This document shows positions 20,653 to 64,000 of a DNA stretch of 64,000 bases, one piece after another. The stretch's first letter is position 1. Every line of letters begins with the position of its first letter. Made by a program: the position numbers and the translations under genes. The notes below the pieces were generated by a model, which had not been told where the DNA came from, did not search any database, and was given only the letters and a program-made list of their open reading frames with translations. The DNA comes from Bugula neritina (Eukaryota > Animalia > Bryozoa). The stretch covers positions 12,390,642 to 12,454,641 of the forward strand of contig OZ037770.1 in the NCBI GenBank assembly GCA_964035545.1, given 5' to 3'.

Positions 20653-22940
20653 CTAATAACCATGAACTTCAACCTCATGAAGGTTTAAAGCTGTTGTAGC
20701 ATTGAATAGAATCTGAACAAACCGGCCACTGATTGGTTGATCACATGTAGCTAGAGTGTAGTATTGGTTGAGATAACTATCAACATATTTACACAGAACT
20801 TCTCTGTTAGATCCAGTAAACTCTATATCTTCCTCTGCCATAGCAACTGTTACTTCTGCGTTCATTGCTTTCTGACTGTATTCTATTTCTATAAAATTAT
20901 AATTCATCTATGAAACTTTCTTTTAAAAGTCTGAAAGTTTAATCTTTTGATTAACCTTGACTGCATGTGCATTATTTTCAAAAACTGCTCATTTTTAGCT
21001 TGTTTAGATTTTTTGATTATGGCTGGTGCAAAAAATTCTATGCTGATTTTTCACAATTGACTTTGATAAAAGAGTAGAAAAAAATTAGAGCACTTATTCA
21101 ATCCCAGGATCATTAATGAAGCTATATTACTGCTGTTTATATCCAAAGTTTGTGCATATGTGATACACAATATAGTGCAGATATGTTCTACCAATAAGGC
21201 AATCATACTCACCCTTAAATCTGTTGAGAATGTTAACAGCCCAGACACAGTGTACATCTCCCAGGTCTACTCTCCACCATGGTCTAGTCTCTCTTAAACT
21301 ATGTACCATTGATATTCGTTCATCTGCAGTTTCATATAGATACCGTCTACGGCTGCAGCCGCACCAAATGATAATTTCTTGACGGAATATTCCAGAACAG
21401 ATGATAGTTCTGCTAATTTATCTAGAAAGATAAAATTATGAGTTGTTGCTTCAGAACTTTTATTGATTTTATTACAAATTTTTTGATTTTATAAATTTTA
21501 TTACATTCAATTTTTTTATGTCTAAATTTTAAGGCCAGTATTTACATTAAAAACTTTGTAACATGTTTTAATGTCTGTGATATGTAATAAATCAAATAAT
21601 AGATCATTAATCACTTAATAAGGCATTTCCTATAAAACTTGCATTCAAAAACCAAAAGTTGAATCTGAGTTCTTTGCTATAATAAAAACTGAAAATATTA
21701 ATATAATTATTTCTCAACTTAAAATATGATATAAATCAGGGTTGGGATCAAATACATGTGAATGTAATTATTTACAATTACAGGAAAATTTGTCAATCAC
21801 AGTTACAATTATAATTACAGTTAAAAAGTAATGTAATTAATTACAAGTACAATTACATGGCAATGTAATTAATTACAATTGCTAATAATTTTGTTCTCGC
21901 AAGAGATAAATAGAAGTTATGCCATCTAACTTCTAGGGTCCAACTACTAGGGGCAATTTTGACAGTGGTGAACCTTCTTTGTTGTCAAAGGTGATACTGT
22001 ACTACATTGACTTAGTCTGAACTTCTTAGTTAACGCAGTAGGCATGGTAGGAAATATAGGGAATTTTTAAAATTTTAAAGTTTGAAGTAATTGACGTGTA
22101 ATTGTAAAGTAATTGTAAAAATCAATTAAATGCATTACATATGTAATTGATTACCATTACAATTGAAATTACATTTCTATGCATGCATCAATTACAAATT
22201 ACATTTAATTACTTGAAAAAATTAAATAATTACAACCAATTACAATTGCAAATTACAATTACCCCAAACCTGATATAAATATCAATAAAATTGCTCACTT
22301 CTAGCGAGTAATTTAGTGAATCTTTCTCTAACATCTGCTCTGATGTAGAAATCAGAATCATCTCCCTGTCCTTCAGGATACAGATTAGGGTTAACACATG
22401 TTTTAGCAGAGCATTTCTTGGTTAGCAAGTCATATGTGAATCCATTGCATTCTTTATTTTTCAAGCAATGAAAACCACAGTTATAGCTGGTAGAAATCGC
22501 CGTCCCAGAGTCATGTTGTGAAATGTTGGAGAGAGATTCTGGCATGACATAACTCTTGTAGAAGACAGCCTGGTTACCAGATACAGCCAGAGCTGTAAAC
22601 TTTACTAACAGCACTGCAAAAATATTATTTATAAAACAAATTCATTACCAGCTGTTTATTTTAGAAATGTTATATAATTTTTTACAACTATATAAACTGC
22701 CGTGCATATGTCTTGATCAGAATGATAAACTGAAAACTAAAAGCATGCAGGTGTATCAGTTTCTATTCAAACAATTACTTTGTATGCCAACATTTAAGTA
22801 TCCATACATTAATATGTGCATTTTGATTCTTTATTTGTCTAAAATTAAAACCACAAATGATATAAAATACTAGCAGAATGAAATTTGCTTTTAAAAAAGA
22901 TTTGCTTACCAAGTTTGCATGTCCTAAACCTGTCTTGCAT
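20653..22940 (-). pseudogene. PAN/apple + F-type lectin gene copy L1, with a +2 frameshift in exon 3
   Basis: Exons 22910-22940 (MQDRFRTCKL), 22299-22613 (signal peptide + PAN), 21213-21421 (FTLD N-half; 209 nt vs 207 in paralogs, extra AT at ~21334-21338 leads to a premature TAA), 20653-20888 (FTLD C-half). Confidence 0.8.
21737..22272. mobile_element. Non-autonomous hAT-type MITE in L1 intron 2
   Basis: TIRs CAGGGTTGGG / CCCAAACCTG, perfect 8-bp TSD ATATAAAT (21729-21736 and 22273-22280), many AATTAC/GTAATT subterminal repeats. Confidence 0.88.
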
Positions 22941-23336
22941 TTTTTCCAAACCCCTAGTAGCAACCTTAGCAAATATTAGTTTAGCTACACCAAATGTGGT
23001 GAACTTTCCTAACAAGTGACTTCATCTCTAATGTTTTTGATTATCTGTTAAATACCATATATTCCAGGAAAGATAATTAATTTGAAACATAAGTTTAGGT
23101 TAAAGTTCTTTAAAAATATAGAAAATCTTTATCTGTAAACATAATAAAGTTTGCTTGAAACTATTGATTGTCATTAGCGTTAAAGTTAGAGTTATAGAGC
23201 TGTATCAATAAAAGAAAAGAAATTTCTAATTACTTTTTTCTTGTACATGTATAATACACAGCACATTTGTTTGATGATGATCAAAGATCTTAAATATAGT
23301 GTAATGAATTAATAGCAGTCTTTATCTATATACAAT

Positions 23337-61174: not shown

Positions 61175-64000
61175 TAAGCAACATGAAAGAAATATCTAAC
61201 TATTGAGCATTTTAATAACAGTGAATCAATCAACGAAATATAGCTTGATGAGCATCTTTTATCTAGTATATAATGAACTTTACAACTTAAAAAGACAAAG
61301 AAACATTTACGACTGTATAATGTAACAGGCTGCTAAAATTTTTTGGTCATCAACAGAAGATATTACTGCACAAGTAAATGTTTAATGCATTCGAAAATTA
61401 GAATTTCAAAAGTGCAGGTTTTGAAGAAAATTTTTAAATTTTGGAAAAACACTTCGTACATGTAACAAAACAGGCCTATGAATTCCAGACATGTGCACTT
61501 GGGGCATTTAACCTCTATAGCTCATTGCAGTGTTTCTTGATCAATTATTATCAATTAGCAAGCTTTTTGGATGATAAATTTGGAATTTAAAAAACTTAGC
61601 AAAGTAAAATTTATTTATATTCTAGTCCAATGTAATTCAAAACTAAGAACATGTATCCAATAATTAATATAGTGCACAGCAACAATACTTATATGGAAGT
61701 ACTACATTATATAATACTTATACTAAAAGTACCGTAATGTTATAGGTTTGACTCTTACTTTTTGATGTAATGTATGTCTTATTATGGGCTATCATAGCTC
61801 ATCAACTATTGTATAAATCAATGTTTTGGTTTTGCTCAATTTTGACTAGTTATATTACACACAGCAGTCAATAGGCTGAAAGAAAAGTTTATCCCACGCA
61901 TGACACCAGTGCACTCTAAGTTAATTTTGGTGGTCAAGCTGCAGTAACAACTCTATTTAAATAATAAGGAGAGACCGTGCTAGTAATGATGCAAAAGGTA
62001 AGAGGAGACAAATCTTAAAAAGAAAACATTACTAATTGAGGAGACAAATCTAAAGAGAGGACAACAGGATATGGAAGCATATAAAGCATATTCGATCTCA
62101 CTCAAGAGTTGTCTCATCCAACATTGTGTTTACAAAAGACAAATCTTTAAAAAAAGCATCACTTATTGAGGAAAAAAATCTAAATCATGTGGAAGCATAC
62201 CAGAGTCATAATTGTTTTATCCAACATTGTATTTACACAGGTATTGATTTTCTATGCATGAATATTTTCAACAACCTTATGAATTACCAAATGTAGCAAA
62301 TTTAGGGAGTGGCTAATTCTATAATCTATTTGAAACTCACCTAATTTCCTTGCATTGTATTGGAGTTGTGTACTCAATAGTTGCATTTAGCCGTTCTTGC
62401 ATTATGAGTATAATGAAGTCACTATATATAGTGACATAGTGACTATAGTTAACATAACAGTCATAACCTAAGAACCTAACTCTTTAAGTTTGCAACATTT
62501 GTGATTGTGAATTAGTTTTTTAGGCTAGGGTTGTTTCGAACTTTTGTATGAGTAAGAGTAATTCAATAAAAACATTGCGTTCAACCTGTATGCTGCAATT
62601 TACTACAATTTTCTAGTTTTATTATGTATAATTAGGCATCATTTTCACATTGAATGCTAAGATGGTACGCTCCATGGCTAATCAAAACCTGTTATTAAGG
62701 AAACAACGAGCATCGAAGAAAAAGAATTTATAAAAGAGGAGAATTACTAAATTACTTTCTAGGAAGAAGTAAACCAACCATATAAAATGTGGTAAGCCAG
62801 CGGCCAGTATTAGATACGTGCATGAATTTATGCTTGGTGCTTGTTGCCTTTGTTTATTGTACCTTATTTTACACGCTATGTTAGAGTAGCATTATCCATA
62901 GGGCTTGTAATATAAACAGAAAATTAAATACATGTGTTTGACAAAAGTATAAAGAATGTTATTGAAATATTGAAACATGATTTACTGGGATGTTATGTTC
63001 ACGTTATAGTCATTGGCCAGCCAGGGTGGAAGAGAGAAAATACTAAAAGGCATTTTCTTTCAGAGTTTATTTATACAACAAAAGACAAACTATATTTTAG
63101 AAATTTTCAAATGTACTGAATAATTTTGTGAAATAAAAGGAAACAAACAGATTTAAAACAGGTACTAATTTTTAGTTTACAAAGTTTTTAGTGAAAGATT
63201 TGTCGAAAAAAGAATTGACTAGATACAACCATATTAAATACTATTTTCTACTACATATATATATATATATATATATATATATATATATATATATATATGG
63301 GATTTGCTATCTAAACTCTATAAATAGTTTTACAAATAAAAAGAAACAAATTATTGGTATTACCTATAAAATTGAATCATAAATTAATTCATTTGTATTT
63401 TTGCATAAAATTTGCATTATAATTAATTTTTGTTCAGTTTATTGCATTATGCTAATTTATCTAATTCCTACATTAAACAAAAGTTTGTGAAGGAAGAATA
63501 AGAAAAAAATAACTGCATGAGTGTTCAAACCTAATCTGGCATTTTTCCCAATAATTTAAAAACTACTACCACTCTAAAACCGTCACACAAATTTTATTAT
63601 TGTGGTCATTTGACATTTTTCTTAAAGGTTTGGAGAATAAAAATGTGAACAGCAAAATAAAAGTAATTGCAGCAAATATGTAAAATTTACTGCTTGTAAC
63701 TTATACCTGCTATTGCCTAATAACCTTGAACTTCAATCTCATGAAGGCCTAAGCCTGTTACAGCATTAAACAGAACCTGGACAAAGCGGCCACTGATTGG
63801 TTGATCACATGTAATCAGAGTGTAGTATTGGTTGAGATAACCATCAACATATTTGCACAGAACTTCTCTGTTAGATCCAGTAAACTCTATATCTTCCTCT
63901 ACCATAGCCACTGTTACTTCTGTGTTCTTCGATCTCTGGCTATAGTCCAAAGCTGAAAAACACATTTTAAATTCTACGCTGCTATATGTCCAGTTCATAA
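61175..64000 (+). repeat. Segmental duplicate of ~54230-57240
   Basis: Collinear through intergenic DNA, TA tract and lectin last exon; lacks the 55370 SINE. Confidence 0.88.
63717..63952 (-). CDS. L9: last exon of a further PAN + F-type lectin copy that continues beyond the window
   Basis: 236-nt exon like all paralogs: LDYSQRSKNTEVTVAMVEEDIEFTGSNREVLC...NAVTGLGLHEIEVQGY*. Confidence 0.88.

Follow-up and report, generated by a model that had tools for sequence, protein, structure and literature searches.

F-type lectins share the fold of eel agglutinin (Anguilla anguilla, 1K12), in which five loops, the complementarity-determining regions (CDR) 1-5, encircle the fucose pocket, and in eel fucolectins the variation between isoforms is centred on these loops (PMC5712786). 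Pacific oyster sperm bindin also has its variable sites around the fucose pocket, recombines between intron-split domain halves and lacks triad residues in some copies; only a few genes encode it, their diversity stems from alleles and splicing, and positive selection on them is robustly supported. Domain-restricted conversion, homogenising part of a protein beside divergent specificity regions, is described for the clustered protocadherins, RHD/RHCE and opsins (PMC3966226, PMC3924837), and loop exchange among paralogs, with many broken copies as possible donors, for chicken immunoglobulin (Ig) V genes, the major histocompatibility complex and Sp185/333 (in part, PMC3924837). Here we describe a family of PAN + F-type lectin genes in the bryozoan Bugula neritina, nine loci of which (L1-L9) lie in a stretch of 64,000 nucleotides (nt) that we call the window (assembly GCA_964035545.1, contig OZ037770.1, here C6, 12390642-12454641; the genome searched comprised 216 Mb in 321 contigs).

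The Bugula lectins resemble eel agglutinin, eFL-1-7 and MsaFBP32 (3CQO) in fold, in a His-X26-Arg spacing followed by a second basic residue, in an Asp-Arg clamp and in one disulfide, but differ from these lectins in their N-terminal PAN domain, their ~80 loci, their variation in loop length, a scaffold homogenised at the DNA level, and a CDR4 that is hypervariable, eight residues long and devoid of the Asp and the vicinal Cys-Cys. Unlike bindin they are paralogs scattered in large numbers, each with a single lectin domain, and unlike the protocadherins, RH genes and opsins, which are unrelated proteins, their putative conversion tracts form sub-exon islands that cross chromosomes and strands and leave introns unconverted. 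The family is real, large and undescribed, its scaffold probably homogenised by conversion and its loops old and shuffled. Our preferred account, to which we assign a probability of about two thirds, is that of a birth-and-death lectin family in which conversion homogenises the scaffold while the loops are kept old and sometimes swapped, the products likely serving as a panel for non-self glycans.

Gene anatomy was worked out by motif scans, self-BLAST, splice-site inspection and local tblastn against the window. Four coding exons of 31, ~312 (291-321), 183-210 and 236 nt are joined by phase-1 introns, exon 2 encoding the end of the signal peptide and the PAN domain, and exon 3 the first half of the lectin domain. 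An earlier note on this DNA, made from the letters alone, had claimed at least nine genes, every copy with four exons; the layout (31/312/~207/236, phase 1) was right and the family is larger than claimed, but in this assembly only L3, L4, L7 and L9 (which runs past the window) are intact, frameshifts interrupt L1, L2, L5 and L6, and of L8 only exon 3 remains.

Divergence is distributed very unevenly along these exons. Mean pairwise amino-acid identity is 0.94 in the RPWW block and 0.93 in the exon-4 core, compared with 0.20 in CDR1, 0.29 in CDR2, 0.35 in CDR4 and 0.56 in CDR3 and CDR5. The near-identity of the framework extends to synonymous sites, as the earlier note had seen: four-fold degenerate sites differ at 0-8% over alignment codons 201-235 (the exon-4 core) and at 3% in the RPWW window, against 40-58% in the loops and adjacent scaffold residues. 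Between subfamilies the proportion of synonymous differences (pS) rises from 0.13 in the exon-4 framework through 0.23 in the RPWW block to 0.48-0.63 in CDR1, 2, 4 and 5, and the conserved scaffold between CDR1 and CDR3 stands at 0.50. The synonymous rate (dS), which on the earlier note's reading should not be uniform along the exons, varies more than 10-fold, from 0.14 in the exon-4 framework to 0.75-1.4 in CDR1, 2, 4 and 5. Introns and 3' flanks compared between subfamilies (recent sisters excepted) are 54-57% identical, against 53-55% for shuffled sequence, in agreement with the dissimilarity of introns noted earlier. Because introns stand at the level of shuffles and loop synonymous sites are diverged, the paralogs are old and it is the framework, not the loops, that is anomalous. 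The loops, previously called unalignable, are indeed variable but can be aligned within subfamilies and between orthologs. Paralogs of the PAN-lectins in Watersipora are only 35-43% alike and vary freely where the Bugula framework is invariant, so the fold itself does not need invariance. From these synonymous-site figures, comparisons of the divergent J subfamily with the core subfamily were excluded as unreliable from exon 4 onward, J4 being interrupted by a stop codon where exons 3 and 4 meet. The PAN-encoding exon 2 is less invariant than had been implied, with an identity of 0.73 overall and 0.61 in a variable patch of its own around the first Cys pair; the peak of PAN divergence lies mid-exon 2 in all copies (~34080-34040 in L3) and may mark a second variable binding surface.

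Signs of exchange between genes are widespread. Over-long identical runs (p<0.01, permutation within exons) occur in 74 of 378 gene pairs. Among them are a run of 119 nt shared by L7 and H2 and one of 148 nt, the longest, shared by L11 and D2, non-sister genes separated by 0.4-1.2 Mb; the pairs also join genes that lie on different strands or at distances of up to 1.2 Mb. Part of this excess may reflect rate differences within exons, which cannot account for pair-specific tracts in the variable exon 2; the first 200 nt of exon 2 in L5 are 95-98% like those of L4, a non-sister. In approximately unbiased (AU) tests, exon 2 (tree length 3.5), the loop-bearing half of exon 3 (9.5) and the exon-4 core (0.7) rejected one another's trees. 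Individual genes are mosaics: L7 has an L12-like exon 1 and intron 1 and is L9-like from exon 3 to the 3' flank; H2 has H1-type introns, an L12-like CDR1 and a B1-like CDR2; L2 has an L10-like 3' flank; and B1 and H2 agree at 89% over CDR2-3 and 97% over the rest of exon 3, against 43-58% in introns and 38% in CDR1. A two-base Gln/Arg variant is common to eight genes with differing backgrounds. From the identical tracts of 100-150 nt and the conflicting exon trees we infer that ectopic gene conversion homogenises the scaffold and also moves loops between genes. Little weight was given to a four-gamete test, which on a star tree cannot tell conversion from homoplasy. Conversion templated by cDNA was considered and rejected, as introns are kept in every modelled copy, which favours a DNA template, and the 3' untranslated regions (UTRs) are not homogenised.

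The history that would best join these results begins with secreted PAN + F-type lectins that have long evolved by birth and death across the genome; between their copies, DNA-level conversion tracts of ~60-150 nt would form wherever the coding sequence is still similar. Purifying selection would keep the scaffold alike and thereby allow frequent conversion, which would homogenise it down to synonymous sites, while introns, UTRs and indel-rich loops would be too diverged to pair and would retain the old age of the paralogs; selection probably also resists overwriting of the loops. Tracts starting in the scaffold would sometimes carry a loop into another gene and so create new CDR combinations. 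The product would be a germline lectin panel with a mostly conserved His/Arg/Arg primary site and differing extended sites, whose most likely role is the recognition of varied non-self glycans of microbes or symbionts.

Several observations weigh against so simple a history. Syntenic DNA of B. neritina GCA_010799875.2 and two Joint Genome Institute (JGI) samples aligns with ~76-92% identity in the flanks, which suggests that these and the window genome belong to sister or cryptic Bugula lineages. The proportion of differing sites (p) at four-fold positions of the framework is ~0.10 within the window genome, within the sister lineage and between the two, hence no net divergence, and in the central 100 nt of the exon-4 core p is 0.039 and 0.038 within lineages and 0.037 between them. 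Paralogs are not more alike within than between lineages, and lineage-wide fixed alleles were not found. A neutral simulation of conversion among 37 loci, run without ancestral polymorphism or gene flow, predicts a net divergence of 0.05-0.10 (P 0.003-0.012 for the observed absence), the sister sample being small and mixed and the block chosen post hoc. This points to conversion biased toward the existing base, or else to some addition to conversion as such: gene flow, constraint on the nucleotide sequence, or a family-wide sweep that preceded the split. In plastid repeats, copy-dependent repair lowers the substitution rate with no need for selection (PMC6590440). GC-biased conversion was rejected as the cause of the synonymous stasis, the core having a third-position GC content (GC3) of only 0.26. 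Most divergence peaks, moreover, sit near exon edges or indels, and selection against conversion is for this reason not separable from loss of homology. Separately, an inverted pair of I1-like genes in the sister lineage (stretch L029, 2795-8189) encodes identical exon-4 proteins with different CDR1.

The stasis could instead mean that selection on a shared DNA or RNA element (a small-RNA target, a splicing or mRNA element, or a recombination anchor) constrains the nucleotide sequence of the exon-4 core, perhaps along with further framework blocks, conversion being secondary. This is unlikely in our view, although orthologs differ at only 2 of 79 four-fold sites in the core compared with 22 of 124 in the loop half of exon 3 (intron p 0.06-0.13), divergence within a lineage equals that between lineages, variants in the core are mostly singletons, and the J subfamily retains 92-95% DNA identity there though its exon 2 protein is only 44-48% alike. 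A stable RNA structure was rejected (z +1.7), broken genes show no more departures from the majority base (1.8 per 99 nt) than intact genes do (2.3), the block was singled out post hoc, repair of repeats lowers rates without selection, as cited above, and conversion is needed anyway for the loop swaps and the pair-specific tracts of exon 2. More doubtful is a programmed or biased, paralog-templated conversion resembling that of chicken V genes, in which the framework islands would be nucleotide-level anchors for the shuffling of CDR cassettes, with broken copies as donors, possibly in somatic zooid lineages; the Bugula genes differ from chicken Ig V genes in lacking an Ig domain and any evidence of a somatic or enzyme-directed process, and nothing in this DNA is suggestive of a rearranging locus. 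That similar exons were overwritten in assembly or polishing is extremely improbable: several frameshifts do fall within dinucleotide runs, but the same framework recurs with different introns in two JGI assemblies and in GCA_010799875.2.

Returning to the loops, an ongoing arms race, with positive selection as the main source of their diversity, would be the antibody-like reading proposed earlier, and we hold it to be about as unlikely as the shared element. Our codon models, run on the 46 unhomogenised codons of exon 3, did support selection (omega ~2.5 at 27-29% of sites, with p=2e-4 to 3e-4 for M2a against M1a and p=9e-4 for M8 against M8a), the flagged sites falling in CDR1-3 and at one inter-loop site, and in the pairs L2-L4 and H1-H2 the proportion of nonsynonymous differences (pN) in the loops is ~3x the intron divergence. 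The loop alignment in these models is uncertain, however; p rose to 0.006-0.03 without gapped columns or with F1x4 (0.03 for F1x4), to 0.07-0.12 when either half was analysed by itself, and to 0.27-0.54 once seven genes, clear recombinants and genes with short loops, had been taken out, the smaller sets having less power. An omega of 5.7 under M2a for exon 4 was rejected as confounded by the dS heterogeneity. In seven ortholog pairs loop pN is 0.17 and loop pS 0.23 (pN/pS 0.73), with an intron p of 0.13 and a scaffold pN of 0.03-0.04; loop pN ranges widely, from 0.05 in L3 to 0.26 in L7, and CDR1 of L3 is identical in both lineages. On average, then, loops evolve at close to the neutral rate, some being conserved and others accelerated or replaced, and because ortholog loops evolve near the intron rate a standing repertoire with episodic selection fits better than a continuous arms race. 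The claim of a diversified, antibody-like hypervariable pocket is accordingly weakly supported, as synonymous sites of the loop region are equally diverged and support for omega>1 goes with the recombinants; "antibody-like" overstates what are mostly old, paralog-specific loops. The same molecular mechanism might also serve gamete recognition, adhesion or allorecognition. Selection and recombination have diversified one F-type lectin, oyster bindin, for gamete recognition (PMC5712786), and bryozoans are colonial, but bindin varies between alleles of a few loci, whereas the Bugula diversity lies between paralogs at ~80 dispersed loci, whose orthologs are conserved and whose products lack a membrane anchor, and such a role seems very unlikely. 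An immune role for the family is what we infer instead.

Database searches were run exon by exon, and the fold model is that of a Watersipora homolog rather than of a Bugula protein. The second exon of L3 matches Pfam PAN_1 (23.6 bits, cut-off 21.4) with four conserved Cys. Exon 3 matches 3CQO (4e-10) and 1K12, with a gap-free alignment to residues 52-79 of eel agglutinin (AAA); a profile of Watersipora homologs aligns to AAA residues 9-151, and the first structural match of the model of one such homolog (predicted local distance difference test score, pLDDT, 59) is 1K12. The variable segments align to CDR1 (after the SS motif), CDR2 (after DGxY), CDR3, CDR4 (flanked by the two arginines, where exons 3 and 4 meet) and CDR5, which supports their equivalence to the five loops of eel agglutinin. 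Intact products of 260-261 amino acids have an N-terminal hydrophobic stretch and none later, so are probably secreted, and they presumably bind glycans. The earlier proposals of an F-type lectin fold, CDR mapping, a secretion signal and a germline family with a homogenised scaffold are supported.

The equivalent of triad residue His52 is His in 19 of 21 open-frame genes (Asn in L3, Gln in L7), Arg79 is matched in 19 of 21 and Arg/Lys86 in all 21, the last by an alignment-based assignment, and the His-X26-Arg spacing is present. The exact R-X-D-X4-R/K motif and the vicinal Cys82-Cys83 are absent from these genes, eight (once seven) variable residues without a conserved Asp or Cys pair lying between the basic residues. 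V-D-G of the calcium motif h2-D-G-x occurs in 21/21, with x mostly Ile, Val or Leu, where the motif has a small hydrophilic residue. Specificity for fucose is likely but not assured from these residues, since the CDR4 Asp and vicinal cysteines are lost though the His/Arg/Arg triad is mostly kept. The Asn of L3 recurs in its sister-lineage ortholog, which suggests a stable change of specificity.

Genome-wide, exon 4 gave ~82 near-full matches at >=59% identity and exon 2 gave 80, hence a family of ~80 loci. Exon 4 matches at >=79% number 37, on three large contigs (C6, C3 and C7), and constitute the subfamily of the window. In this core subfamily protein identity to L3 is mostly 70-95% for exons 2 and 4, and never >76% for full-length exon 3. 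A 22-mer from the most homogenised exon-4 block matches exactly at 30 genomic sites. Gene models were made for 31 loci in the window and in stretches L001-L020, ~45 distant loci on C1-C9 being known from match tables only; of those modelled, 21/31 have an open frame (two with a damaged splice site) and 10/31 are broken. Orphan exon-3/exon-4 fragments and stop-containing remnants (stretches L003, L005 and L006; C9) still carry the exact core 22-mer and are possible conversion donors. The J genes (stretches L018-L019, C6:14.16-14.17 Mb) lack the Arg79 equivalent, and one has a GC donor.

The closest named proteins are fucolectin-like proteins of Watersipora subatra (e.g. XP_067939544.1) and "Apple domain" fragments of Bugula neritina EB796 (68-86% identity), which share the PAN + F-type lectin layout and family-specific motifs; the Watersipora paralogs seen have no homogenised scaffold, and the EB796 entries are incomplete gene models that carry no account of the family. 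Searches of the protein libraries gave no full-length Bugula member, and our literature search returned no paper on a bryozoan PAN + F-type lectin family and none joining F-type lectins and Bugula. Bryozoan immunity is almost undescribed, and the family would add an inherited recognition repertoire of an evolutionary type already known from eel fucolectins, oyster bindin and protocadherins. Near-identical scaffolds bearing ~30 loop sets amount to a natural loop-swap library for mapping CDR sequence to glycan specificity. The family also offers a clear view of how conversion and selection shape sub-exon islands, and lets one ask whether repair among many copies slows substitution in a nuclear gene family of an animal as it does in plastid repeats.

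Table 1. Lectin loci and other features of the window (positions in the window; exons in the order 1 to 4).
Feature	Position	Strand	Exons	Remarks
L1	20653..22940	-	22940-22910, 22613-22299, 21421-21213, 20888-20653	exon 3 frameshift, +2 nt in assembly
L2	28151..31108	+	28151-28181, 28738-29051, 29319-29528, 30873-31108	exon 2 frameshift, +2 nt; L4 is its intron sister
L3	32790..35760	-	35760-35730, 34196-33885, 33408-33202, 33025-32790	intact, 261 aa; signal peptide, PAN, F-type lectin
L3 exon 4, codons 20-52	32868..32966	-		~100 nt, most homogenised block; ~2 differences per gene from the majority base
L3 exon 3	33202..33408	-		first ~135 nt CDR1-CDR3 (old, paralog-divergent); last ~70 nt homogenised RPWW block and start of CDR4
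L4	40623..43315	+	40623-40653, 41256-41567, 41833-42039, 43080-43315	open frame, 261 aa; exon-3 donor a weaker GT, 3 nt 5' of the usual site
L5	45306..48310	-	48310-48280, 46852-46541, 45907-45701, 45540-45306	-1 nt frameshift close to end of exon 4
L6	51402..53961	-	53961-53931, 52948-52635, 52015-51809, 51637-51402	+2 nt frameshift late in exon 2; L5 is its sister
L7	56950..58779	-	58779-58749, 58520-58209, 57947-57744, 57185-56950	intact, 260 aa; chimera
L8	60264..60490	-		isolated broken exon 3; exons 1, 2 and 4 not found
L9 exon 4	63717..63952	-		exons 1-3 <=2.4 kb beyond window end; gene intact; L10-L13 next
LINE ORF	36736..39885	-		intact, 1049 aa; endonuclease and reverse transcriptase; between L3 and L4
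785-aa ORF	7578..9935	-		75-bp tandem repeat (8.7 copies); no Pfam match
Acidic ORFs	12443..12943, 17201..17740, 25741..26124	+		no Pfam match
~210-bp interspersed element	18655..18863, 23331..23547, 26180..26316, 30420..30623, 55364..55580			among lectin genes; copies <=92% alike
Palindrome	59832..60139			imperfect, 300 bp; adjoins L8 remnant
LINE, long interspersed nuclear element; ORF, open reading frame; aa, amino acids.

Around the lectin genes, the first two acidic open reading frames are paralogs that have a 21-bp repeat in common and fall within a duplicated segment (10598-18125). In the sister assembly, BIR-domain and Bcl-2-family genes flank lectin loci (stretches L027, 1-6394, and L026, 14134-19282).

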